64,000 bases of DNA, from sequence record ON529850.1; one strand, 5' to 3'. Numbering within the stretch: the first letter of the stretch is position 1; the number at the start of each line of letters is the position of its first letter. Both the position numbers and the translations under genes were made by a program. Under the pieces are notes generated by a model. The model was not told where the DNA came from. It saw only the letters and a list, made by a program, of their open reading frames with translations, and did no database searches. Below, piece by piece: positions 47,278 through 58,666 of this stretch.

Positions 47278-48372
47278 TTACTCTTCAGGGCCTTTTGGAC
47301 CGTTCTCCCGGAACGTGAGGCGATCGTGACCGTCCGACGTCTTGGTGAATTCCTCCACCGGAAGCCCAGCGACCCGCATAGCTTCGACATCGTAAGTCGT
47401 CCTGCCCTTGATCCAGGAGAGGGACACCTTGGCGAATCCCGGAACCTCCGCTCTTCGCACCCCTGTTTGCCGGAACCATTCCTTCAACCTTTCGGTCGCT
47501 TTCCTGTGTTCCGTCTCCGAGGCCTTGCGAGCGTCGGCGGCCGCACGTTCATCCCGCAGGATGGCCTCGAATTCTTCCATGATCGGCAGCGGCGTATTCT
47601 CGAAGTTGGCGTGACCGCTCGTCGGGGTCGCCGCCGCCGTGGCCTTGGCGCACGCGCTGGTGAAGGGGCAGTAGTCGCAACCACCCTCCACCTTACCTTC
47701 GGGAAAAATGTCGCTGGCGTTCTTTATAGTGTAGACGGATCGCGCTCTTTCCTTCGCGGCGTCGTAGGTCCTCTGATCGAACGGGACCACGAAGATTTCG
47801 ATGTCGTCAAAGAAAGAAGCGTCGATGTAAACGATCACAGCATAGGCGGGCTTATACTGCGTCGTTTCACGCGTAATACCCATCTGGATCATCACTTGCC
47901 CCCGGTGAATGCTTTTCTCTTCGCGGAGATTTACGCGGGGGTCGATGGATTTGATCTCGAAATTGAAGCACCCCGCACCGCCCAGGCTGGGAATGCCGTA
48001 GAGCGCGAGGGCGTCGTCGTCGGCGTCGATCACCAGTCCGTCCGGCGTGGCGGTCAGAGGGGCGTCCGGCGCCTTGAGCGTCTGCTGATTGTCGCCGCCC
48101 CAGATCAGGCGCGTGTCGTAGTAGTAGTTCTCCAGGAACCACTTCACGCCCGGCTCGGCGAAATACTGCTCAATCAGGTCGCCGCGTTGCAGGGCGCCCC
48201 AGCTGTCCTTGTAGTCCGAATTCTTCTCGCCGCCGTTCTTGGCGAACCAGGCCTTACGCAGACAACCGAACGCCTCGGAAGCCCCCATGGTCTTGGAGCG
48301 GTCGTGCGCCCAGACCTTCTGGTGACCCTTGACAAAGGTGTCGTAGGCTTCCTTGAAGTCGATAACGGCCAT
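47278..48372 (-). CDS. PD-(D/E)xK Cas4/RecB-like exonuclease
   Basis: ASEAFGCLRKAWF, TPDG, FEIKS, Q..IQM, CDYCPFTSAC. Confidence 0.82.
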   Translation of the reverse strand: MAVIDFKEAYDTFVKGHQKVWAHDRSKTMGASEAFGCLRKAWFAKNGGEKNSDYKDSWGALQRGDLIEQYFAEPGVKWFLENYYYDTRLIWGGDNQQTLKAPDAPLTATPDGLVIDADDDALALYGIPSLGGAGCFNFEIKSIDPRVNLREEKSIHRGQVMIQMGITRETTQYKPAYAVIVYIDASFFDDIEIFVVPFDQRTYDAAKERARSVYTIKNASDIFPEGKVEGGCDYCPFTSACAKATAAATPTSGHANFENTPLPIMEEFEAILRDERAAADARKASETEHRKATERLKEWFRQTGVRRAEVPGFAKVSLSWIKGRTTYDVEAMRVAGLPVEEFTKTSDGHDRLTFRENGPKGPEE

Positions 48373-48401
48373 AAAATTACGTGACTCAATACCCGTCGCG
48401 A

Positions 48402-48989
48402 TTAAGCCGCGCGGGCAAAATCCTGGAGGTAGTAGAAGAGATCGCGGCAATCCTTGACGTCGCCCACAGCGCGGTGAGCGGCCGTCGGCGCGCGATCCAG
48501 AAGATGCGGGATCGCCAATTCCAGCTTGGGCCAGGCATAGCCCTTCTTGCCGAACTTGGAGGGGAACTTGCAGACCGGAACCGCCGCCAGCATGGTGCAG
48601 AACGGCTTCTTGCCGGCGAACACGTCAATCTTGGGATTGCCCGAGATGAGCCGCGCCGCATTGTTGATCACGTTGACATCGAACTCGATATTGTGCGCCA
48701 CCATCAATTCGGCCGCCATGACCATGTCGCAGAACACGTCCAGCGCGGCGTTCTCGCCGACGCCGATCGCCTGAGACTTCTCCGTCGTGGTGCCGTGCAC
48801 CTTAGCGGAGGCGTCCGGGATCGGCTGATCCCGATACACGATCAAGTCGATGCGCATGACCTCTTCACGCGCCTCCAGGTCTTCCAGGATGGCGGCGATC
48901 TGAACGATGCGCGGTTGATCTTCATGACCGCACGGAAGATTCTTGTCCCACAGGCCGGTGGTCTCGGTGTCGAAGAACAGCCCCAACAT
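48402..48989 (-). CDS. DEDDh 3'-5' exonuclease (DnaQ-like)
   Basis: FFDTETTG, VAHNIEFD, FCTM, AHRAVGDV. Confidence 0.9.
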   Translation of the reverse strand: MLGLFFDTETTGLWDKNLPCGHEDQPRIVQIAAILEDLEAREEVMRIDLIVYRDQPIPDASAKVHGTTTEKSQAIGVGENAALDVFCDMVMAAELMVAHNIEFDVNVINNAARLISGNPKIDVFAGKKPFCTMLAAVPVCKFPSKFGKKGYAWPKLELAIPHLLDRAPTAAHRAVGDVKDCRDLFYYLQDFARAA

Positions 48990-49462
48990 CAGGCGTTGTC
49001 CTCTTCACTGCGCTTGCGGATCATATCGTGCAGGTAGGAGACGCTGGAGGCGATGTCGCTCTGAACCTTCGGGTCAGGCTTGTGCGCGTCTTCAGCCGCC
49101 TTGGCGGCGCCTTGCAGGGCCAGCTGCGCGTAGAGCGCCAGGAACTGGACCGCATCCATCAGACGCTGGGTCTTCAGCGCCGATCGCGCCGTCAGGTAGT
49201 CGAGCATCAGGGCGCGGATGCCCATGAACAGGAACCAATAGACGCCGAAACCGATGACGGCCCAGCGCAGACCTTCAGAGACCGACTTCACCCAACCGAA
49301 CCCGGCCAAAACCAGCCAGGCGGTGAAGATGAGGCCGCCGCCCACCATGATCAGGGAGATCGAGGCGCGGAACTGGTCGCTGATCGAACGAAAAGCCACG
49401 CCGAGGTGCACAGTGGGCTGCGCGTCTTCCGCCGGTTTTTCGGGAGTGGTGGTGTCAGTCAT
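48989..49462 (-). CDS. Membrane protein (two TM helices)
   Basis: Two hydrophobic segments; GAGAG RBS. Confidence 0.6.
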   Translation of the reverse strand: MTDTTTPEKPAEDAQPTVHLGVAFRSISDQFRASISLIMVGGGLIFTAWLVLAGFGWVKSVSEGLRWAVIGFGVYWFLFMGIRALMLDYLTARSALKTQRLMDAVQFLALYAQLALQGAAKAAEDAHKPDPKVQSDIASSVSYLHDMIRKRSEEDNA

Positions 49463-49522
49463 GTCGCTCTCAAAGGGGACGGTAGTTGTTAACCATTTCT
49501 GGCAGTGATTGTCAATATTTCC

Positions 49523-49549
49523 CACACTCGGGTAGTGGCACAGTTTGAA
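49523..49549 (+). repeat. Left TSD plus TIR
   Basis: CACACTCG|GGTAGTGGCACAGTTTGAA. Confidence 0.9.
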
Positions 49550-49807
49550 TTCAGGCCGCCCAGCCGACGCTCGCACCCCTAGCATGCGTCTTGATCAGTC
49601 TTCCTCGTTCGCGGCGATCCCCGCTGCGGTGAAGGAGGTCGGCATGAAAGCGATCAACGAAATCACGTTGCGGCGCGGCCCGCATGAATATCGGATTAGG
49701 CAATCCGAGCGGGTAGCCAACGACCGGTTCGAAGGGCTGATCGATGGTGTGGTCCTGATTGAAGCCGATTCCCCGGCGCGGGCGCTGGGCGCATTGATCG
49801 CCAGCCC

Positions 49808-50395
49808 TCAGCTTTCCCCGTCGGTAGCCTCGGCGGGCGCCGTAGGCGACTGAAGCCCCATGGAATGGGCCACCAACATGTTCGACACCTTCAGGGCCTC
49901 GGCGACATCTCGCATGGCCTTGAGGGAGTCGAGATAGAGGTTGTCGCGATCAATGAAGCCCTGGGAGATGTAGGCGTCCGTCAGGATTTCACTCTCGGAG
50001 GCCTTAAGCCCAACGGCCTTCATCATGCCGTGGATCATCGTCGCCTGCTTGGCGTTCATTCGCTGGTTGTGGTCCGGTCGGCGATCCTCTGAGACCTCTT
50101 GGCGGACCAGTTCCAGATATTCCCGTCGCGCCTGCATTACATCTGCGCAGTCGTTGAACTCGACCTCGATCAAGTTGACCGCCATCAGATAGGTCGGATC
50201 AGAGGGTAGCCGTCGCGTTGTCAGGATCATCCTTAATACCTGGGTCCGCGCATCGGAGCGCCGGCGGCGCCGATCGATCCACAAGGTAACCAGAACGGCC
50301 GACAAGGGACCAGCGAACACGCCGGCCAGCGTTAGGAGTTCGTAGGCCTTAAGGCCGAGGAAGATGGGGTCGGCAGCAGCAGCGGATGCGTTCAT
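49808..50395 (-). CDS. DUF6680-like protein (passenger)
   Basis: N-terminal TM helix; VLRMILTTRR...LMAVNLIEVEF pattern. Confidence 0.6.
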   Translation of the reverse strand: MNASAAAADPIFLGLKAYELLTLAGVFAGPLSAVLVTLWIDRRRRRSDARTQVLRMILTTRRLPSDPTYLMAVNLIEVEFNDCADVMQARREYLELVRQEVSEDRRPDHNQRMNAKQATMIHGMMKAVGLKASESEILTDAYISQGFIDRDNLYLDSLKAMRDVAEALKVSNMLVAHSMGLQSPTAPAEATDGES

Positions 50396-50439
50396 GAATC
50401 GACGATACCCGACTCACTGAGCAATCAACCACGGGAATA

Positions 50440-51669
50440 TCAACGCTTCGGCTTACTGCCACCTCGTCCACGCCCGCTCCCAAGGCAGTAGTAGTCGCCC
50501 AAGCAAATCCGGCACTCCGTCACTTCGTCCGGAACCAGATCGTAGGCGAGGTCGCGGGCCTTCTCGATGGTCTCGCACCTGAACTTCTGCGATCCGCCCT
50601 TCTTGCTCGCGCGGTCGGGCGCGTCTCTGAGGTGCTTGCAGGAAGAAGCGTGAATCTTCGCGTATCGATGCGTAAGGCTGCACATCACTACGAACGGCGC
50701 GTCGTCCGCCGGTGGAGCCGAAGGCGGGCACACGACCTCCTCGGCCTCTTCTTCCCCCAAGGACGCGCCCTTCGTAGCGGCCCTGTAGTCGTCCACGAGA
50801 TCAACGAAGTCGCGCCACGTCCATCCACTGTCATCGATCCCAGACGCCACGGCCGGCGTCGTCTTCAGCGTCATGTGGATGCGGATGAAGTTGTGGTAGA
50901 ACACATACAAAGCGACCGACCGCTTCAAATTCGTCAGCGACTTTGAAAACAGGGTCGTCTTCCTCGCGAGACGTCCCAGGTTCTGCCTGAACTTCTGGAA
51001 GAACGACTCGATGTGGTTCGTCGTGACCAGCGCCATGTCATGGGTGCCGCTCCTCACCTCAGGCGGGGATTTCTCTCGTCGTGCACGCCGCTTTTTCGGC
51101 TGCTGTCCCACCCCGAGGTATTCCTCGATCACTTCCTGCTGCTGATCGTCCTGCTTCTTCACAGTGGCGTAATCGATCTCGCCGCCCCAGGCGCTCTCGA
51201 TGGCGCCGAAGTAGGGGTGGTGAGAGTCCGTCGTCATCTGAAGTCGCCTCGGGCATCGGGCCTTGAGGTCGTTGATGAACGCCTTGGCGTCTTCGTGCCC
51301 TCGGCCACCGACATGCCAAGCCACCACCAGCTTATTGACGGCGTCGATGGCGATCCAAATCCAGAACACGCCCATGCCGGGCGGTGCGCGCATCTTTCTG
51401 GCCCAAAGGGTTCGCCCCCGAATCCCGACGTATGCGTGGAGTTCATCGGCCTCGATAAGGGTCGACGGTAAATCCCGCATCCGGTCGTCGAGGAATTCAA
51501 TGGCGGTGTCGCCGGCATCGGCCAGCAGCTTCTGGATCGTCGTGCGGCTCGGGTGGCCTGATTTTCCGGTATTGCCTTCCTTCGTTCGATGCAGGCCACG
51601 GATCGACATCCGCTCCATCATGTCCTGGAGCAGTGCGACCTGTTTCTCTGGGCTCAATCGGTTGACCAT
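50440..51669 (-). CDS. tnp: IS1-family-like DDE transposase with C-terminal Cys/His extension
   Basis: IEADELHAYV (D), WIWIAID..KLVVAWHVGGR, TTDS (D), NHIES (E), YHNFIRIH.TLKTTPA. Confidence 0.85.
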   Translation of the reverse strand: MVNRLSPEKQVALLQDMMERMSIRGLHRTKEGNTGKSGHPSRTTIQKLLADAGDTAIEFLDDRMRDLPSTLIEADELHAYVGIRGRTLWARKMRAPPGMGVFWIWIAIDAVNKLVVAWHVGGRGHEDAKAFINDLKARCPRRLQMTTDSHHPYFGAIESAWGGEIDYATVKKQDDQQQEVIEEYLGVGQQPKKRRARREKSPPEVRSGTHDMALVTTNHIESFFQKFRQNLGRLARKTTLFSKSLTNLKRSVALYVFYHNFIRIHMTLKTTPAVASGIDDSGWTWRDFVDLVDDYRAATKGASLGEEEAEEVVCPPSAPPADDAPFVVMCSLTHRYAKIHASSCKHLRDAPDRASKKGGSQKFRCETIEKARDLAYDLVPDEVTECRICLGDYYCLGSGRGRGGSKPKR

Positions 51670-52061
51670 CGATCAGCGTATGCGTCGGGATCGAAACAGA
51701 GGTCAACGCCTCTTATTTCCATAATTCTGGAATTCTCGAATTATGTGTTCTCTTGAGCACAGGCGGATAAGCGAGAAGTCAGCGGCAGTTCGGGGCGACA
51801 CTAAGGCTCTGTAACTAATTAGCTAATGCGGCACATTTCAGTAAGTGTGACATGATTTTCAGCAGTGATTGACAACATTTACGTCATTCGTTGCTTGAAA
51901 TCTATTCACTCAGATGGATGGGTGTGGCGGTATGTCGCAGACAATCCTTGTAAAACTCGGTGGGGTGAACTCCAAGCACCTCGGCTAGTTTCCCCAGAAC
52001 CGCCACGGTCGGATTTCCCTCGCCGCGCTCGATCCGCCCCAGATGCCACGCCGGCGCCATC

Positions 52062-52307
52062 GTGGCGGATCAAATCGTCATCCCAGACGGGAGCGTGCGC
52101 GGTTTGGTCGTGGAGGTCCGCTTCGACGGCTACCCGCACCGTTTCCGTCTCGATCTCGCGCCTTCGGGGACCTACGCTCCGACGCCGGTGGACATCCCGG
52201 CCGTGCCCGCTCAGGTCACCCAGAGCATGATGCGCACCGCAGAGACGTGGCATTGGACCGATGGTCCGCCGCCGACCACGTTCCAGGGAATGCCGATCAT
52301 CGATTGA
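52062..52307 (+). CDS. Hypothetical protein (passenger)
   Basis: GTG-start ORF upstream of arsR. Confidence 0.35.
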   Translation: MADQIVIPDGSVRGLVVEVRFDGYPHRFRLDLAPSGTYAPTPVDIPAVPAQVTQSMMRTAETWHWTDGPPPTTFQGMPIID

Positions 52308-52371
52308 AACGGCACAGACGGCCCGTCGCGAGCAGGCTTGCGAACTTCCTTAGTTCCACTATCTTGGAATC

Positions 52372-52707
52372 ATGGAAACCGAATCTGCAATTCTCGCCCT
52401 GGCCGCTCTGGCGCAGCCTACGCGCCTCGAGACTTTCCGCCTGTTGGTTCGTCACGAACCCGAGGGATTGCCTGCCGGCGAGATCGCGGACGGCTTGACG
52501 GTGCCGGCTAACACCATGTCGGCGCACCTGGGCGTTCTGTCCCGCGCTGGCCTGATCAGTTCCGAGCGGCGCAGTCGATCAATCATCTATCGCGCCGACC
52601 TGGACCGCCTTCAAGCGCTGGTTCTGTTCCTGCTCAAGGACTGCTGCCAGGGCCGCGTCGATCTGTGCGAGCCGCTGCTGGCTGAACTCGCGACCTGCCG
52701 CGCCTGA
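52372..52707 (+). CDS. arsR: ArsR-family repressor (C-terminal Cys type)
   Basis: LAALAQPTRL..FRLL, NTMSAHL..L.RAGLI, KDCCQG...LC. Confidence 0.95.
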   Translation: METESAILALAALAQPTRLETFRLLVRHEPEGLPAGEIADGLTVPANTMSAHLGVLSRAGLISSERRSRSIIYRADLDRLQALVLFLLKDCCQGRVDLCEPLLAELATCRA

Positions 52708-52714
52708 GGAAATC

Positions 52715-53137
52715 ATGGACGTCGTCATCTATCACAACCCCGCCTGCGGGACGTCTCGCAACGCCCTGGCCCTAATCCGCCATGTCGGGATCGAGCCGCA
52801 CGTCATCGAATATCTGAAGACGCCGCCGAGCCGCGCGATGATCGTGGGACTGGTCGAGCGCATGGGCGTCCCGCTGCGCAGCCTTCTTCGCGAGAAGGGC
52901 ACGCCTTTCGCTGAACTGGGTCTCGGCGATTCAGCCATGAGCGATGACCAGTTGCTCGACGCCATCGAGGCGTACCCTGTCCTGCTGAACCGTCCCATCG
53001 TCGTGTCCCCGCTGGGCGTGAAGCTGTGTCGGCCGTCCGAAGCGGTTCTCGAAATTCTGCCGCCTGAGGGCCTGAAGCCCTTCACCAAGGAGGACGGCGA
53101 AGTCGTCATCGACGCCGAGGGGCGGAGGGTCCGCTGA
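52715..53137 (+). CDS. arsC: Arsenate reductase (glutaredoxin-dependent)
   Basis: [26 protein letters not shown]. Confidence 0.95.
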
Positions 53138-54222
53138 TGGTCGACGCCGTGATTACTGACCAGCCGAAACGCCGCCTGTCCTTCCTCGACCGCTGGCTAA
53201 CGCTGTGGATTTTCGCCGCCATGGCGCTGGGTGTGCTGTTGGGCACGGTCGTGCCGGGGCTTCCCGCCTGGATCGACAGCCTGTCGGTCGGGACGACCAA
53301 CGTCCCGATCGCCATAGGCCTGATCCTGATGATGTATCCGCCGCTGGCGCGGGTGAAATACGAGGAACTGCCGCGCGTCTTCGCCGACAAGCGCGTGCTG
53401 CTGCTGTCCCTGTTCCAGAACTGGGTGCTGGGGCCGGTGCTGATGTTCGCCCTGGCGGTCATTTTCCTGCGCGACCAGCCAGAATACATGACCGGCGTCA
53501 TCTTGATCGGTCTGGCCCGCTGCATCGCCATGGTGCTGGTCTGGAACCAGTTGGCGCGTGGCGACAACCAGTATGTGGCGGGTCTGGTCGCCTTCAACTC
53601 GATCTTCCAGATCGCCTTCTTCAGCCTCTACGCCTGGCTGTTTCTGACCGTGCTGCCGCCCCTGTTCGGGCTGGAGAGCAGCGTGGTCGAAGTGAGCGTC
53701 TGGACCATCGCCGGCGCCGTCCTGGTCTATCTGGGCCTGCCCTTCCTTGGCGGTTTCCTGACCCGGCGCGCGCTGGTCGCGAGGAAGGGGAGCGACTGGT
53801 ATGAAACGCGCTTCTTGCCGCGCATCGCGCCGATCACCCTGATCGCCCTGCTGTTCACCATCGTCGCCATGTTCAGCCTGAAGGGCGGCGAAGTGGTCGC
53901 CCTTCCGCTGGACGCCCTGCGCATCGCCATCCCGCTGACGATCTACTTCTTTGTCATGTTCGTGGTCAGCTTCCTGATGGGACGCCTGATCGAGGCGGAC
54001 TATCCGCGCACCACGGCCCTGGCCTTCACCGCCGCCTCCAATAATTTCGAACTGGCGATCGCCGTCGCCATCGCGGCTTTCGGACTGGCCTCGCCCGTCG
54101 CTTTCGCGGCGGTCATCGGCCCGTTGGTCGAGGTGCCCGTGCTGATCCTGTTGGTCTCGGTCGCCCTGTGGCTGGGCCGCCGCTACTTCCCCGCGACCGC
54201 CCCGAAGAAGGGCGCCTGCTGA
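53137..54222 (+). CDS. acr3: Acr3 arsenite efflux transporter
   Basis: [48 protein letters not shown]. Confidence 0.95.
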
Positions 54223-54662
54223 TGGGCTTCAACGTCGTGGAGTTGCCCCAGCCCACCCCCGACCTGATCACCGCGCTGGAGGCCGCCGGCCTGCCGACGG
54301 ATGACCTCCATGAGCCCGGCCGTCGTTTCTTTCGTTTCAAGGACGATGCCGGACTGATCGGCTACGGCGGGCTGGAGCAGATCGGTCCTGATGCCCTGAT
54401 CCGCTCCATGGTCGTCGTCGATGACCGTCGCGGCGCCGGCTTGGGCGCGGCGCTCCTGTCCTGGCTGGAAACTGAGGCGGCCGATCGGAAAGCGTCCGCC
54501 CTCTACCTGCTCACGACCTCTGCCGCCGCCTTCTTCCAGCAGCACGGCTACGCCGCCCTGCCTCGTTCCGCCGCGCCGCCCGCCATCGCCGCTTCCAAGC
54601 AGTTCAGCGCCCTGTGCCCGGCTTCGGCGGCTTTCATGTTCAAGGAGTTGCGCCCCCAATGA
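54222..54662 (+). CDS. arsN2: GNAT N-acetyltransferase ArsN2
   Basis: [35 protein letters not shown]. Confidence 0.85.
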
Positions 54663-55411
54663 CCCGCCTTCGCGTCCTGCCCGATCCCGACCATATGCCC
54701 GCGCTCGACCCGGCCTACCTGTCCAGCCAACCAGCGCTCGGCCTCGGTCCGAACGACCATCCGCCCCGCATCCTGCTGCTCTACGGCTCGCTGCGGGATC
54801 GTTCCTTTTCCCGTCTGTGCGTCGAGGAGGCCGCGCGCCTTCTGCGCTTCATGGGTTGTGAGACCCGCATCTTCGATCCGTCCGATCTGCCTCTGACTGA
54901 TCAGGTCGACTACGACGACCATCCCGCCGTCCACGAACTGCGCGAACACGCCCTGTGGTCCGAGGGCATGGTCTGGAGCAGTCCCGAGCGCCACGGCCAG
55001 ATTTCCGGGATCATGAAACTTCAGATCGATCACCTGCCGCTCAACATGGGCGGCATGCGCCCGACCCAGGGCCGCACCCTGGCCGTCATGCAGGTCTCGG
55101 GCGGCTCGCAAAGCTTCAACGCCGTCAACACCCTGCGCCTGCTCGGCCGCTGGATGCGGATGATCACCATCCCCAACCAGTCCAGCGTGGCCAAGGCCTT
55201 CATGGAGTTCGACGAGAATGGCCGCATGAAGCCGTCCAGCTACTACGACCGCATCGTCGACGTGATGGAGGAACTGGTCCGCTTCACCATCCTGACGCGC
55301 GCCCATGCCGGCCAGTTGGTGGATCGCTATTCGGAACGGAAAGTAGCAGGCGTCCCGATCGATGCGGTCCGCGATCTTTCGGCTATCGCGATTGGGGCGG
55401 CGGCGGCCTAA
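54659..55411 (+). CDS. arsH: NADPH-dependent FMN reductase ArsH
   Basis: [39 protein letters not shown]. Confidence 0.95.
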
Positions 55412-55632
55412 CGGGCTTTCGGGGCGGCTGCAAGGCGAGCCGCCCGGCGCGCTGCCAAGCGTTCCGCGATCGCCCTGATTTTCTCCCGCGACGGGCGCGG
55501 CGCGCTGCGCCCCTCCAACTCCACGGGGTCGCAGACGGTTTCCGGATCGACATAGGGGGAGCCGTCCGGGTTCACGTTGCCCACCAGCTTTTCGAGTTCG
55601 TGGGCCAGCGCCTCGCGCTCATCCTTGTTCAT
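55408..55632 (-). CDS. Hypothetical protein (passenger)
   Basis: GGAGAAGG RBS; convergent with arsH. Confidence 0.45.
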
Positions 55633-56165
55633 CGAGCCTTCTCCGACGTCGCTTCACTATACCAAGGAGCCATCGCATCAGCAATTGCGCCTAATTTCAG
55701 TCGATCCGCGCAACCACACCTCTGCGTCAAGATCATATGGCGGATATACAGTCAGGCGACGATACAATTATGGTTAACGCCGAGTCCAGAGGAATTGTAG
55801 ACGCCCGTAACAATTAGCCAGCGCCAATATTCTTGGCAATTATGTAGTAGATTGCCTGACCTATAATTAGCCAAATTCCGATCTGGATAGTAATCGCTTC
55901 CTGAATAATTAAGCCGTCACCGGTTCCGGCTCGCACAAGCCCGCCGAAGGAGGGCGTGGACAGCGCCCTCGAACGTGGGCGAGCAAACGCATTCGCGTCC
56001 GTGCAGCGAGCCGACAAATTGATGGGTTCCGTTCAGCCAGCGGCGCCTGACGGCGAGCCCTGGAATGGCGGCGGAGATTTGATCGGTTCTGTATCGCATT
56101 GGGACAGCCCTTCGGTTCAAGTCCGAAGGTCGTGTCGCTGCACGGCACAGCGCTCAACGCCTCAT

Positions 56166-56192
56166 TTCAAACTGTGCCACTACCCACACTCG
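56166..56192 (-). repeat. Right TIR plus TSD
   Basis: TTCAAACTGTGCCACTACC|CACACTCG. Confidence 0.9.
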
Positions 56193-56194
56193 TA

Positions 56195-58666
56195 TTAGTG
56201 GGTCTCGGACCACCTACGACCGAACTTGACGTCGACGTCGACGGGGCAGCGGAAACCGAACTGCATCCCGGCGTCATAGGCCGCCGCTTCGATGTTGCGT
56301 TCGCAGATTTCCCGGATACGGGGATCGTCGCGGACCGCCACCTGAAGTTCGTCGTGAATCCAGGCGACGATCGCGAAATCGCCGTCCCAGCCGTGAGTGA
56401 GGCCGTCTTCCAGGCAGTATTCGTGGAAGTTCACACACCACTGCTTGGCGATGGTCGCCCCGGCGCCTTGCAACAGGGTGTTGAGCGCGGCGTGCTGGGC
56501 GCGCACGAACAACTTGCGCCCGTCCAGCGCATCCAACATGCCCGACCGGGACTGACGCTGGATGTTCTTGACCACCTGGCCCAGAGCGGGAATTCGCGTC
56601 ATGAGGCGGCGGCGCATTTCGGCGCCGACCGACTTGGCCTGGGTCGGCTTCAGCGCCAACGCCGGATCAATGACCGTGCCCAGCTTGAAGTCCTGGGCGC
56701 CGTAGATCAGGGCGTAGATGAAGGTCTTGGCGGTGTCGCGGTTGTTCAGCTCCAGAACCGAGGTGTGCAGGTCGTGCGGGTCGGCGTCGACCACCAGGCG
56801 GGCATAGACACCGTCATCGTACTCGGCCATGAAGTGACCGAGCGCGCGCAGTTCGATGCCCTTCTGGTCGGCGCCCATCAGCACCCACCCTTCCGGCACG
56901 ATGAAGAGATTCCGGCTGTTCCAGCCGTGGTCCCCGCAACGTCCCTTGAGCATCTGCTTCTTGGTCGCCACCTTGCCGTCTTCGATCTCGTAGACGCCTT
57001 CGCGGCCGTCCAGCTGGATGATCTGGCGGTAGACGCCCTTCTCGTCGGTATAGCCGTCGAGCAGCTGCCCATCCGCGTCGAAGAGCGGCTCATTGGTCCG
57101 CACCTTCTTGGGCGTCCCGGCGATCTGTTCGCCCGTCAGAGGATCGAGCAGCGGCGTGAGATCGGAGCGTTGATCGAAGAGACGAACGCCGTCCTCCTCG
57201 ACCCAATAGCCGTAGACGATCTTGCCCTGGACGAAATCGATCTCGACGCCGGGTTCGACCCACTGCTTCAGCTTCTTGAAGACGACGCGGGGGACCTGGG
57301 CGATGTTAGGGTTGGCGTGCGAGGCGCGATTGGTGACGGTCCCGCCGACGTTGAACGTGGCGTGAATCTTCCCGTCGCCGCGCTCCATCGCCTTGCCGAT
57401 CCAGCCGTTCTTGCCGTCGACAAGCTGGCCCAGGCGCTTCTTGTAATAGAAGAGCTCCGCCAGTTCGTCGCAGATCGGAATGGTCTGGGCGAGGTCGCGC
57501 AGGATTTCATCGTTAACCGCGATGCCGCCGGTCTCGGTCCGATCCCGATCGTCGTGGTCCCAGCCGTAGATTTTCTCCAGGCGGTCGATGATCTGGGGAC
57601 GCGACGAAGGGTTGAACTCCTTGAGCTCCACCGGGCAATAGGCGCACCCGGCCTCCTTGTCCGCCTTGCCCGATCCGGGCTTGAACTTCATCGACTTCTT
57701 GGGGACGGTGATCTCGCCCCAGTTGTGTCGCCCAGCGTCCTCGCCGTGCTCGCCGCGCGGTTCGAACTCCTTCTTGGTCTTGACGATCTTGCCGGCGTCA
57801 TCCAGCTGCGGCTTGCCCGTCTCAGGATCGATGACCTCGACGGTATAGGCCTTGCCGATCGTCTTCCATTTGGACGGCACCCACCAGCTGCCGAAGTGCG
57901 CGATCGCCTTGGCTTCCTTCTCCGCCACGACCGCACGCAGTTCCGCCTCCAGGGCGTAGGCCTGCTCCATGTCGAAGGGGAAGCCGTTGTTGGTGACCTC
58001 CTCCATCAGGGCGTGGATGCGGTGTTCCAACGTGATCGACTGATCCGAATGGCGGCGCGGGTTGGCCTCCATCAGGCGCCACAGCGCCTCGTTGACGTTC
58101 AAGTCCTGAACGCAGTAGTCCTCCATCTCCTGGTTCCATTCGGACCAGACGAGTCGGATGATTTCCTGCTTGTCGGCGTCGGGGTAGAGTTTCTTCAGCT
58201 CTTCGGCGCGGGTCTTGGAGTAGTCGCCCTTGTGATGGCCCAGGCGCTGACCCCAGGCCTCCAGGCCGTGACGGCCGATTTCCTTGCCTTCGATCTCCCC
58301 GCGTTGGAAGCGCCTAAAGTCACGCTCCTTTTCATCAGCGAAGAAAACTCGACTGAGGACGAGAGTATCGCGAACAAGAGCGTTGCACTGATACTCAGGG
58401 TAAAGAAGTTCAATCACCGGAATATCGAATCCGATGATGTTGTGCCCGACAAGAACGTCAGCTTCCGCCAACATCTTTACACCACGGGCGATCGAGTCTT
58501 GCCGCTTATTCTTGCGGAAGACATGCGTGACCCCCGTGTCGAGGTCGCGAATAGCCAGAATATGGATGCGGCTCAGGACATCGTTACCTTTGTGCTGCTT
58601 CAGGTAGGGCAGCAGTCCGGTGGTTTCGATGTCGAAGAGATACGTCTTGCCGGGGGGCAGCAGCAT
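56195..58666 (-). CDS. polA: Family A DNA polymerase (T7 gp5-like) with 3'-5' exonuclease
   Basis: FDIETTG, GHNIIGFD, YCVQD, GADQKGIELR, AKTFIYALIYG, LNTLLQG, WIHDE. Confidence 0.95.
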   Translation of the reverse strand: MLLPPGKTYLFDIETTGLLPYLKQHKGNDVLSRIHILAIRDLDTGVTHVFRKNKRQDSIARGVKMLAEADVLVGHNIIGFDIPVIELLYPEYQCNALVRDTLVLSRVFFADEKERDFRRFQRGEIEGKEIGRHGLEAWGQRLGHHKGDYSKTRAEELKKLYPDADKQEIIRLVWSEWNQEMEDYCVQDLNVNEALWRLMEANPRRHSDQSITLEHRIHALMEEVTNNGFPFDMEQAYALEAELRAVVAEKEAKAIAHFGSWWVPSKWKTIGKAYTVEVIDPETGKPQLDDAGKIVKTKKEFEPRGEHGEDAGRHNWGEITVPKKSMKFKPGSGKADKEAGCAYCPVELKEFNPSSRPQIIDRLEKIYGWDHDDRDRTETGGIAVNDEILRDLAQTIPICDELAELFYYKKRLGQLVDGKNGWIGKAMERGDGKIHATFNVGGTVTNRASHANPNIAQVPRVVFKKLKQWVEPGVEIDFVQGKIVYGYWVEEDGVRLFDQRSDLTPLLDPLTGEQIAGTPKKVRTNEPLFDADGQLLDGYTDEKGVYRQIIQLDGREGVYEIEDGKVATKKQMLKGRCGDHGWNSRNLFIVPEGWVLMGADQKGIELRALGHFMAEYDDGVYARLVVDADPHDLHTSVLELNNRDTAKTFIYALIYGAQDFKLGTVIDPALALKPTQAKSVGAEMRRRLMTRIPALGQVVKNIQRQSRSGMLDALDGRKLFVRAQHAALNTLLQGAGATIAKQWCVNFHEYCLEDGLTHGWDGDFAIVAWIHDELQVAVRDDPRIREICERNIEAAAYDAGMQFGFRCPVDVDVKFGRRWSETH

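Follow-up and report, generated by a model that had tools for sequence, protein, structure and literature searches.

An IS1-related transporter element carrying an arsenic-resistance operon in the virulent jumbo phage Gurke, and the target preference of its family

The element, its cargo and its insertion site

The window analysed here is a 64,000-nt stretch of record ON529850.1, from Brevundimonas phage vB_BpoS-Gurke, a plaque-isolated, virulent jumbo phage of 321 kb. Within the phage replication module lies an element of 6654 bp (positions 49531-56184), bounded by perfect 19-bp inverted copies of GGTAGTGGCACAGTTTGAA, which begins with GGTAGTG: the left, transposase-proximal end is at 49531-49549 (plus strand) and the right end at 56166-56184 (minus strand). 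These are the only exact copies in the window, where none is expected (100 shuffles), and the repeat reaches 27 nt if two mismatches are allowed. Directly outside both ends stands an 8-bp target-site duplication, CACACTCG (49523-49530 and 56185-56192). A single transposase gene, one open reading frame of 409 aa (50440-51669, minus strand), lies inside. A sequence-only reading of the window had taken the locus for a single-transposase transporter element with these ends, this duplication, an ars operon and a DUF6680-like gene, and all of these points were upheld. With two copies of the terminal repeat in the window, one transposase, passengers inside and no flanking pair of insertion sequences (ISs), the element has the features of a transporter IS or unit transposon.

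The operon is encoded on the plus strand and is translationally coupled, and its five genes are full length and score above their NCBIfam cut-offs. They are arsR (52372-52707, an ArsR/SmtB repressor with a C-terminal CC...C cluster; NF033788, 62.5 bits, cut-off 55), arsC (52715-53137, a glutaredoxin-dependent arsenate reductase; TIGR00014, 128 bits, cut-off 106), acr3 (53137-54222, an arsenite efflux transporter; TIGR00832, 434 bits, cut-off 283), arsN2 (54222-54662, an N-acetyltransferase; NF040501, 154 bits, cut-off 125), whose start overlaps the acr3 stop (TGATG), and arsH (54659-55411, an NADPH-dependent FMN reductase; TIGR02690, 385 bits, cut-off 292), whose start overlaps the arsN2 stop (ATGA). 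From these assignments, the operon would be expected to confer arsenate reduction, arsenite export and organoarsenical detoxification. The DUF6680 protein (195 aa, 49808-50395, minus strand; Pfam PF20385, 83 bits) is encoded after the transposase gene, as it is in the closest relatives. Its N-terminus holds a hydrophobic stretch that, judged by eye, resembles a transmembrane helix. A 69-aa frame reading inward from the left end (49644-49853, plus strand) has no Pfam match and is conserved in relatives L003, L008 and L032, and a 60-aa frame reading inward from the right end (55917-56099, minus strand) is conserved in L003, L008, L036 and L037; the two align weakly with each other (hhalign P = 6e-4). 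A 74-aa frame (55408-55632, minus strand), also without a Pfam match, recurs in the 10.7-kb relatives.

The element had been called intact, which holds for its ends and its transposase; the interior, on the other hand, has lost 846 bp (junction 52046/52047, with CC as the only microhomology). Two 3′ remnants flank the junction, one of an XRE-type (HTH_3) regulator gene (51941-52047, minus strand), of which the first 33 codons are deleted in the alignment with relative L004, where the gene is whole (68 aa), and one of a gene for a 273-aa protein, most of which is gone (52046-52307, plus strand). A 24-bp near-palindrome (ATAATTC-N10-GAATTAT, 51721-51744), 52-75 nt upstream of the transposase start, is a candidate operator, and without its XRE regulator the element may have been left with a derepressed transposase.

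The insertion point falls within a spacer of 70 bp that separates the DNA polymerase gene from the replication gene that follows it, with the right copy of CACACTCG 2 bp from the polymerase stop codon. As had been supposed, the neighbouring genes were spared: the T7-like DNA polymerase gene (56195-58666, minus strand) is intact and 818/824 identical to that of the sister phage Kikimora (ON529857.1), and the gene for a hypothetical 157-aa protein on the other side (48989-49462, minus strand) is intact and identical to Kikimora USN15465 at 154 of 158 positions; the exonuclease is identical throughout (196/196). Kikimora also provides the empty site (...tttcc CACACTCG gattagtg...), with one copy of CACACTCG and flanks of 97.6% identity. 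The depositors left positions 172373-180194 of ON529850.1, which include the element, without annotation, and the published Gurke paper does not mention the element. We also considered whether transposon-bearing bacterial DNA had been misjoined into the phage contig. The lack of annotation would suit such a chimera, but a perfect 8-bp repeat of phage sequence around perfect inverted ends would not arise by misassembly, the sequence reads exactly as in Kikimora once the element is taken out, and no donor genome with an identical copy occurs in the collections searched. A chimera is thus very improbable.

A probable deep branch of the IS1 family

Related elements of 6.6-16 kb occur in the chromosomes of Brevundimonas and other bacteria, with a cargo that varies between ars genes, ars genes together with chrA/SulP, and efflux pumps; ars genes are found in several relatives, even at 42% transposase identity. 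No family member was found on any of 72,556 plasmids, and no second carrier of the Gurke transposase was found among 50,697 phage records. In all 12 insertions for which both ends are known (Gurke, L003, L008, L009, L010, L012, L032, L033, L034, L159, L160/L161 and L163), the target duplication is 8 bp. A version of 10,736 bp, with the same ends and cargo each time, stands at four sites, each of which has its own duplication (L008, L009, L010 and L012), and it thus moves as a unit.

The element had been described as IS1-like, and this stands as far as a relationship to IS1 goes, on a distant branch only. IS1 ends have the form GGT(A/G)ATG with duplications of 8-9 bp, and ISfinder also lists single-ORF subgroups of the family. 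The Gurke transposase, a DDE enzyme, scores 26.8 bits against Pfam DDE_Tnp_IS1 (PF03400; cut-off 24.1), a profile matched by 14 of the 18 aligned relatives, and D75, D148, E221 and R228 are invariant in the alignment. Its relatives carry the JGI label "IS1 family transposase", and an unbroken chain of similarities (E 1e-40 to 1e-25) leads from it to PF03400 proteins of about 280 aa that are named as IS1 family. Compared to the IS1A end from E. coli K-12, the Gurke ends agree at 10-12 of 19 positions (10 of 19 for the left end), with GG.A.TGAC.C in common. The Gurke element resembles E. coli IS1A and the family's single-ORF subgroups in its GGnAnTG ends, its 8-bp duplication and, probably, its DDE domain of the IS1 Pfam family.

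The differences from IS1 are also considerable: the Gurke element measures 6.65 kb compared to 0.77 kb for IS1, its transposase is a single uninterrupted frame without an insA/insB′ frameshift, and it carries passenger genes and follows a fixed-distance target rule (see below), of which we know no example for IS1. The N-terminal zinc finger (CxxC...CxxC) before the helix-turn-helix (HTH) is absent from the aligned clade of about 400 aa and present in the distant relatives P0030 and P0036, and a C-terminal Cys/His domain of about 110 aa is confined to that clade. It is therefore conceivable, though we consider it unlikely, that the element belongs to a separate family sharing only the RNase-H-like DDE fold with IS1, and the score of 46 bits against the NCBIfam IS1 model (NF033558; cut-off 100), together with a weak IS6 score, the missing frameshift and zinc finger and the extra domain, would fit this. 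The similarity chain, the resemblance of the ends to IS1A and the 8-bp duplications argue against it, as does the lack of any match at E <= 0.01 between the transposase and the Pfam profiles DDE_Tnp_IS1595 and Zn_Tnp_IS1595. By profile matches and alignment, the element probably belongs to a deep-branching, previously undescribed single-ORF clade of the IS1 family.

According to the passages of PMC3129680 and PMC9330008 that cite Siguier et al. 2009, transporter ISs were first defined for the IS1595 family. As in the case of those elements, the Gurke element combines one transposase and unrelated passengers within a single pair of IS-type ends and makes an 8-bp duplication; unlike them, it has no IS1595 Pfam match, and its cargo is larger and differs between family members.

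Insertion 15 nt from a -35-type hexamer

At the Gurke site, a -35-like hexamer, TTGACA (49510-49515, minus strand), lies at +16 to +21 outward from the left tip, where the sequence-only reading had also seen it. It is native to the phage, being present in Kikimora too, and it is not incidental, as it is the target signature of the element family: nearly every insertion has one tip placed 15 nt upstream of (T/G)TGAC. Of 38 distinct end flanks, 16 have TGAC at offset 17, where the background rate is 0.19% per position (binomial P = 5e-34), and the distance rule also holds in the later-added L159, L163 and L161, with transposase identities of 57%, 43% and 42%, respectively. The exceptions are L033, with both ends known and no hexamer, L036, with one end known and the near-miss TTGATC, and L160, where the hexamer is shifted by 1 nt. 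The rsfS promoter received four separate insertions, with four different duplications.

The sequence around these hexamers suggests that in most cases the target is a -35 box belonging to an RpoD-type promoter. Of the 18 tabulated promoter-facing flanks, 7 (six independent sites) have GCTA 15 nt past the hexamer and one more has GGTA, and this fits the Caulobacter RpoD consensus (TTGaCgS / GCtANAWC, PMC8144410). Co-oriented genes begin downstream of the hexamer at 53-170 nt. At the Gurke site itself, a simple E. coli-type scan called no promoter, and the -10 region fits GCTANAWC only loosely. As the family inserts just upstream of promoters, it lands in intergenic sequence, where it damages neither the neighbouring genes nor the core of the promoter, and the fixed distance of 15 nt explains the harmless entry into the tightly packed Gurke genome.

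How the hexamer is found can be read in two ways. One tentative reading is that the family finds its targets by recognising promoters, so that the transposase or its C-terminal Cys/His domain would recognise either the -35 hexamer or the bound RNA polymerase holoenzyme and would join the element 15 nt upstream. A second reading, which we put a little short of even odds, is that TGAC at +17 reflects a plain sequence preference of the transposase, to which promoters are irrelevant, and that -10-like boxes follow only since an intergenic TTGAC is usually part of a promoter. In the ends of the element itself, TTGAA stands 15-19 nt from the tip, akin to the target TTGAC at 16-20, and because of this resemblance one DNA-binding domain could read both; moreover, the L032, L034 and L037 sites have no convincing -10. 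A plain preference is, however, less easily reconciled with GCTA at its fixed distance or with the co-orientation of the downstream genes, each of which fits both direct reading of the DNA and a bound RNA polymerase.

Entry into the phage and its meaning

We favour, at a probability of roughly 80%, an ordinary DDE transposition of the 6654-bp transporter IS with its ars operon into Gurke, including a promoter-proximal choice of target. Within the 70-bp spacer of the replication module, a host-type phage promoter would have offered the family's target site, and there the transposase would have cut the DNA with a stagger of 8 bp. The reader of the hexamer may be the transposase, acting through the HTH at its N-terminus or through its C-terminal Cys/His domain, or a promoter-bound RNA polymerase. 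Against this account, the insertion-junction 24-mer was not found in JGI metagenomes.

The perfect duplication and perfect ends point to a recent event, and Gurke was amplified on B. pondensis LVF1; a real insertion from a copy in this propagation host, which would be uninformative on nature, was therefore weighed. Against it, none of the 276 Brevundimonas species representatives holds a copy above 75% nucleotide identity, the closest public copies of the element are only 97.5% identical and do not have the 846-bp deletion, and a collection of 15 billion proteins that includes NCBI genomes has no exact match to the Gurke Tnp, Acr3, ArsH or ArsC. A laboratory origin is thus improbable; the laboratory host probably does not carry the element, and the jump by ordinary transposition would be placed in a natural host. 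Gurke may also be able to pass the element on to cells that outlive an infection. The sequence-only reading took the locus to imply phage-mediated spread of arsenic resistance; since phiCbK-like phages are virulent, such spread is something that we infer.

Phage-borne transposons are familiar from classical and laboratory material, namely P1Cm with Tn9 and the lambda::Tn suicide vectors, which share with Gurke a transposon in a phage genome that could reach cells that escape killing. In Gurke, by contrast, the carrier is a naturally isolated virulent jumbo phage. A survey of phage genomes found 92% of phages to be free of ISs, with no transposon known in an active phage (PMC3429520). In contrast to the near-absence argued there, Gurke offers a clean case, open to checking, in which a cultured virulent jumbo phage harbours a cargo transposon together with a complete resistance operon.

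Beyond this phage, a family of IS1-related transposons of 6.6-16 kb is uncovered, in chromosomes and one phage, with a tie to arsenic genes that persists across deep divergence. Its 15-nt rule is a simple, testable rule of target choice, of which we found no earlier description. Safe-haven targeting is known for Tn7 at attTn7 and for yeast Ty3 and Ty1, which insert upstream of genes transcribed by Pol III. As in these cases, the Gurke family takes a fixed position by a gene-control signal and avoids gene damage, with the difference that the signal is a bacterial sigma-70-type -35 hexamer 15 nt away and that its target selectors are candidates only. If the family does read promoters, bacteria would have their own counterpart of the promoter-proximal integration known from Ty3, and cargo transposons could in this way colonise gene-dense genomes such as those of virulent phages, which would then be natural vehicles for metal-resistance operons.

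Insertion of the element into the Gurke genome

The phage Gurke (321.5-kb genome, Dolichocephalovirinae, phiCbK-like) was obtained from sewage by plaque assay on Brevundimonas pondensis LVF1, and phiCbK-like phages are virulent. The window contains exactly two copies of the 19-mer GGTAGTGGCACAGTTTGAA, in inverted orientation at 49531-49549 (left end) and 56166-56184 (right end), where no copy is expected by chance, and CACACTCG directly abuts both ends of the element on the outer side. We then compared window positions 48000-58000 with 50,697 phage records by megablast, in which Brevundimonas phage vB_BpoS-Gurke (ON529850.1) matched at 100%. The flanks of the sister phage Kikimora (ON529857.1) were 97.6% identical, and the match (3339 bp) falls short of the query by 6662 bp; the Kikimora sequence at the insertion point is tttcc-CACACTCG-gattagtg, where the 8-mer stands in a single copy. 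Since misassembly cannot yield this pattern of ends, duplication and empty site, the insertion is, on this sequence comparison, a real transposition event. The perfect 19-bp inverted ends and the 8-bp duplication claimed by the sequence-only reading were both recovered, as was the empty site that it had proposed to look for in related phages.

The insertion point lies in a 70-bp spacer, 2 bp past the stop codon of a T7-like DNA polymerase gene. Compared with Kikimora, the neighbouring genes are full length (818/824 identical for the polymerase, 154/158 for a 157-aa gene and 196/196 for a DEDD exonuclease), in agreement with the earlier statement that the element had inserted at this position and apparently spared both genes. 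A 24-mer from the junction had no match in the JGI metagenomes. In ON529850.1, whose positions equal those of the window plus 124,000, no features are annotated in 172,373-180,194 (window 48373-56194) and the locus tag GURKE_03270 is missing; this gap spans the whole element and two phage genes that are annotated in Kikimora, namely those of the DEDD exonuclease (48402-48989) and the 157-aa protein (48989-49462). Neither arsenic nor transposons or insertion sequences are mentioned in the paper describing Gurke.

Anatomy of the element and its transposase

Inward from the left end, the element carries a conserved 69-aa ORF (49644-49853, + strand), a DUF6680 gene (49808-50395, - strand), the transposase gene (50440-51669, - strand), an AT-rich control region that includes a 24-bp near-palindrome (51721-51744), and what is left of an XRE (HTH_3) regulator gene and of a gene for 273 aa, the two remnants meeting at 52046/52047. 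These are followed by arsR (52372-52707), arsC (52715-53137), acr3 (53137-54222), arsN2 (54222-54662) and arsH (54659-55411), then a 74-aa ORF (55408-55632, - strand) and a conserved 60-aa ORF (56099-55917, - strand) close to the right end. The arsR-arsC-acr3-arsN2-arsH cargo had been named from the sequence, and all five genes exceed the curated NCBIfam cut-offs; the ars gene starts overlap the stop of the gene before, an arrangement typical of what would be one coupled operon. The conserved ORFs at the two ends, of about 60 aa, both read inward from a start 85-115 nt from the tip (the outermost base of the element); they can be aligned at corresponding positions (hhalign P = 6e-4, probability 29%) and may be old paralogues.

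The closest public copies, at the loci L004-L007 (L-numbers denote loci with related elements, transposases or ends in other genomes and contigs), share 97.5% nucleotide identity with the Gurke copy, which is 846 bp shorter. The deletion junction has CC as its sole microhomology, and the deleted stretch comprised codons 1-33 of the XRE gene, an ORF of 39 aa and 187 codons from the gene for 273 aa. Because of this deletion, the description of the element as intact holds for its ends and transposase and not for the element as a whole. The near-palindrome (ATAATTC-N10-GAATTAT, with GAATTC at its centre) is found 52-75 nt upstream of the start of the transposase gene and may be an operator of the lost XRE regulator, whose loss may, speculatively, have derepressed the transposase. 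Between the XRE remnant and the transposase gene, 51861-51879 (GCAGTGATTGACAACATTT) is alike in 17 of 19 positions to the left phage flank at 49501-49519 (GCAGTGATTGTCAATATTT). The alignment score is about 3 sd above shuffles and the 15-mer is without enrichment in the window; this marginal likeness may be due to chance or to a promoter or operator role of both sites.

A word-based protein search returned only 37 relatives of the transposase, which comprise a clade of about 400 aa at 36-99% identity, proteins of about 280 aa at 30-37% identity, which carry PF03400 and are named IS1 family at JGI, and a few shorter ones (37-46% identity) that resemble fragments. All aligned proteins share D75, D148, E221 and R228, corresponding to a DDE triad and the usual basic residue at E+7, and PF03400 is matched by 14 of the 18 aligned proteins. 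On the Gurke transposase itself, Pfam DDE_Tnp_IS1 scores just above its gathering score and the NCBIfam IS1 model well under its cut-off. The ends of the element share GG.A.TGAC.C, or 10-12 of 19 positions, with the IS1A end of E. coli K-12. Unlike in the canonical IS1 family, the transposase is encoded without a frameshift and has no zinc finger; the N-terminal finger is absent from the ~400-aa clade and present in two distant relatives. The clade has an additional C-terminal domain (about 110 residues, conserved His and Cys), which fell in the ESM Atlas into unnamed clusters only, below 0.9, and a PDB sequence search with the clade profile gave no match. We interpret the transposase as a single-ORF lineage that branches deeply within the IS1 family and would work like IS1. 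Hence, the earlier label "IS1-like" stands as far as the PF03400/DDE_Tnp_IS1 domain, the DDE triad and the IS1A-type ends are concerned, and does not extend to the frameshift, the zinc finger or the NCBIfam IS1 cut-off.

Target choice at a fixed distance from a -35-type hexamer

We read the flanks of related insertions outward from each tip; the set comprised 38 distinct end flanks and was unselected. Almost every insertion has one flank with (T/G)TGAC(A/C/T) at exactly +16 to +21, so that the tip is followed by the 8-bp duplication, 7 nt and then the hexamer. TGAC starts at offset 17 in 16 of the 38 flanks and at all other offsets together only four times, against a background of 0.19% per position (binomial P = 5e-34). 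Among distant elements fetched after the rule had been seen, L159, L163 and L161 obey it and the hexamer of L160 is 1 nt off; the exceptions are L033, which misfits with both ends known, and L036, known from one end only, with the near-miss TTGATC. In Gurke, TTGACA stands at 49515..49510, and the same hexamer is found in the element-free Kikimora, which makes it part of the target and not of the element. The TTGACA promoter just upstream of which the element had been placed is therefore at the distance that is fixed across the insertions, and its position is a signature of the family.

At 15 nt after the hexamer, GCTA is found in 7 of the 18 tabulated promoter-facing flanks (6 independent sites) and GGTA in one more. 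This pattern matches, at the sequence level, the Caulobacter RpoD consensus, with TTGaCgS as the -35 and GCtANAWC as the -10 element (PMC8144410). A co-oriented gene follows 53-170 nt on, such as rsfS, a GATase (purQ-like) gene, rpsD, an IclR-type regulator gene or the phage 157-aa gene. A scan for E. coli-type promoters, which has no model of Caulobacter-type -10 boxes, found nothing at the Gurke target, and a literature search for -35-directed insertion found nothing relevant.

Four insertions in Brevundimonas chromosomes (L003, L004, L010 and L012/L013), belonging to four lineages and three element subtypes, share one relative position in the promoter of rsfS (ribosome silencing factor). 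As their duplications all differ (CAACTGAG, GCATCCCG, GTCGTCGC and GTCGCCGC), these must, from their sequences, be independent events. Either tip can face the promoter, although the one at the transposase end does so more often (11 of about 16 sites).

Together, ends and flanks have shown a DDE transposon with 19-bp ends that makes 8-bp staggered cuts in its target at a fixed distance from a -35-type hexamer. The hexamer may be recognised directly, by a DNA-binding domain in the transposase, or through promoter-bound RNA polymerase. The element's own ends have TTGAA at 15-19 nt from the tip and the target has TTGAC at 16-20; since these positions are much alike, one domain could read both. As a consequence of the fixed distance, the element lands upstream of the promoter core, in intergenic DNA. 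In the Gurke copy, the direction of the transposase and DUF6680 genes is outward across the left end and matches that of the phage genes downstream, so that any polar effect should be smaller.

Distribution of the family and its link to arsenic resistance

The same or nearly the same ends are found in Brevundimonas chromosomes and in other metagenome-assembled genomes, and an 8-bp duplication flanks all copies for which both ends are known. The element at L003 (9347 bp) includes ars genes and a PIN gene in its cargo, a 10,736-bp form, which adds chrA and a SulP transporter gene, occupies four different sites, and 16-kb forms carry patatin, TetR, MFS and ABC efflux genes; L159 measures 8153 bp, L163 8078 bp and L160/L161 about 7 kb. 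The transposases of L160-L163, from ENA metagenome assemblies, are only 42-43% identical to that of Gurke, and ars genes are nonetheless part of the cargo of these elements (arsB or an aquaporin-type (MIP) gene, LMW-PTP-type and Grx-type ArsC, ArsH and ArsR, with a glyoxalase-type gene in L160-L162 only). Because such divergent elements share this cargo, the link of the family to arsenic resistance is old, judging by sequence. One copy adjoins a CRISPR-Cas locus.

Seventeen JGI metagenome contigs (L142-L158; soil, peat and other sources) likewise contain the exact 19-mer end and are otherwise without nucleotide similarity to the element; one of them (L152) encodes an IS1-like transposase of about 290 aa with 30% identity. 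The end is far more conserved than the proteins and the remainder of the element. The backbone was found in none of 72,556 plasmids, where matches were confined to the ars genes (72-81%), and a transposase of the Gurke type in no other phage among the 50,697. Only ten phage records contain acr3, and none of the other nine is presented as the complete genome of a cultured phage: they are 4.5- and 7.5-kb Listeria "phage" records, multi-contig records of "Acinetobacter phage MD-2021a", which has no known host, and "Bacteriophage sp." contigs of faecal origin. In IMG/VR, the pattern of the inverted ends gave 61 matches, about the number estimated for chance, none with a transposase relative nearby. 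A profile search there gave 42 loci (L100-L141) with short IS1-like transposases at 28-44% identity to that of Gurke, none from the ~400-aa clade; these uncultivated viral contigs may hold true phage insertions or host DNA within prophage calls. A literature search for earlier descriptions of the element, or of ars transposons in phages, found nothing relevant.

No copy with more than 75% nucleotide identity was found in 276 Brevundimonas species representatives, and the exact transposase, Acr3, ArsH and ArsC sequences are absent from a collection of 15 billion proteins that includes NCBI genomes. The only identical sequence is a 950-bp Logan contig (SRR22477850) lying wholly within the element. 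These results point to acquisition of the element in a natural host and not in the propagation host LVF1. The load of 6.65 kb is about 2% of the Gurke genome and lies within the 5-6% of packaging slack cited for phages (PMC3429520), which may explain how a jumbo phage tolerates it. Spread of the ars operon by the phage would need transposition from injected phage DNA into surviving cells, as is the case for laboratory suicide vectors.
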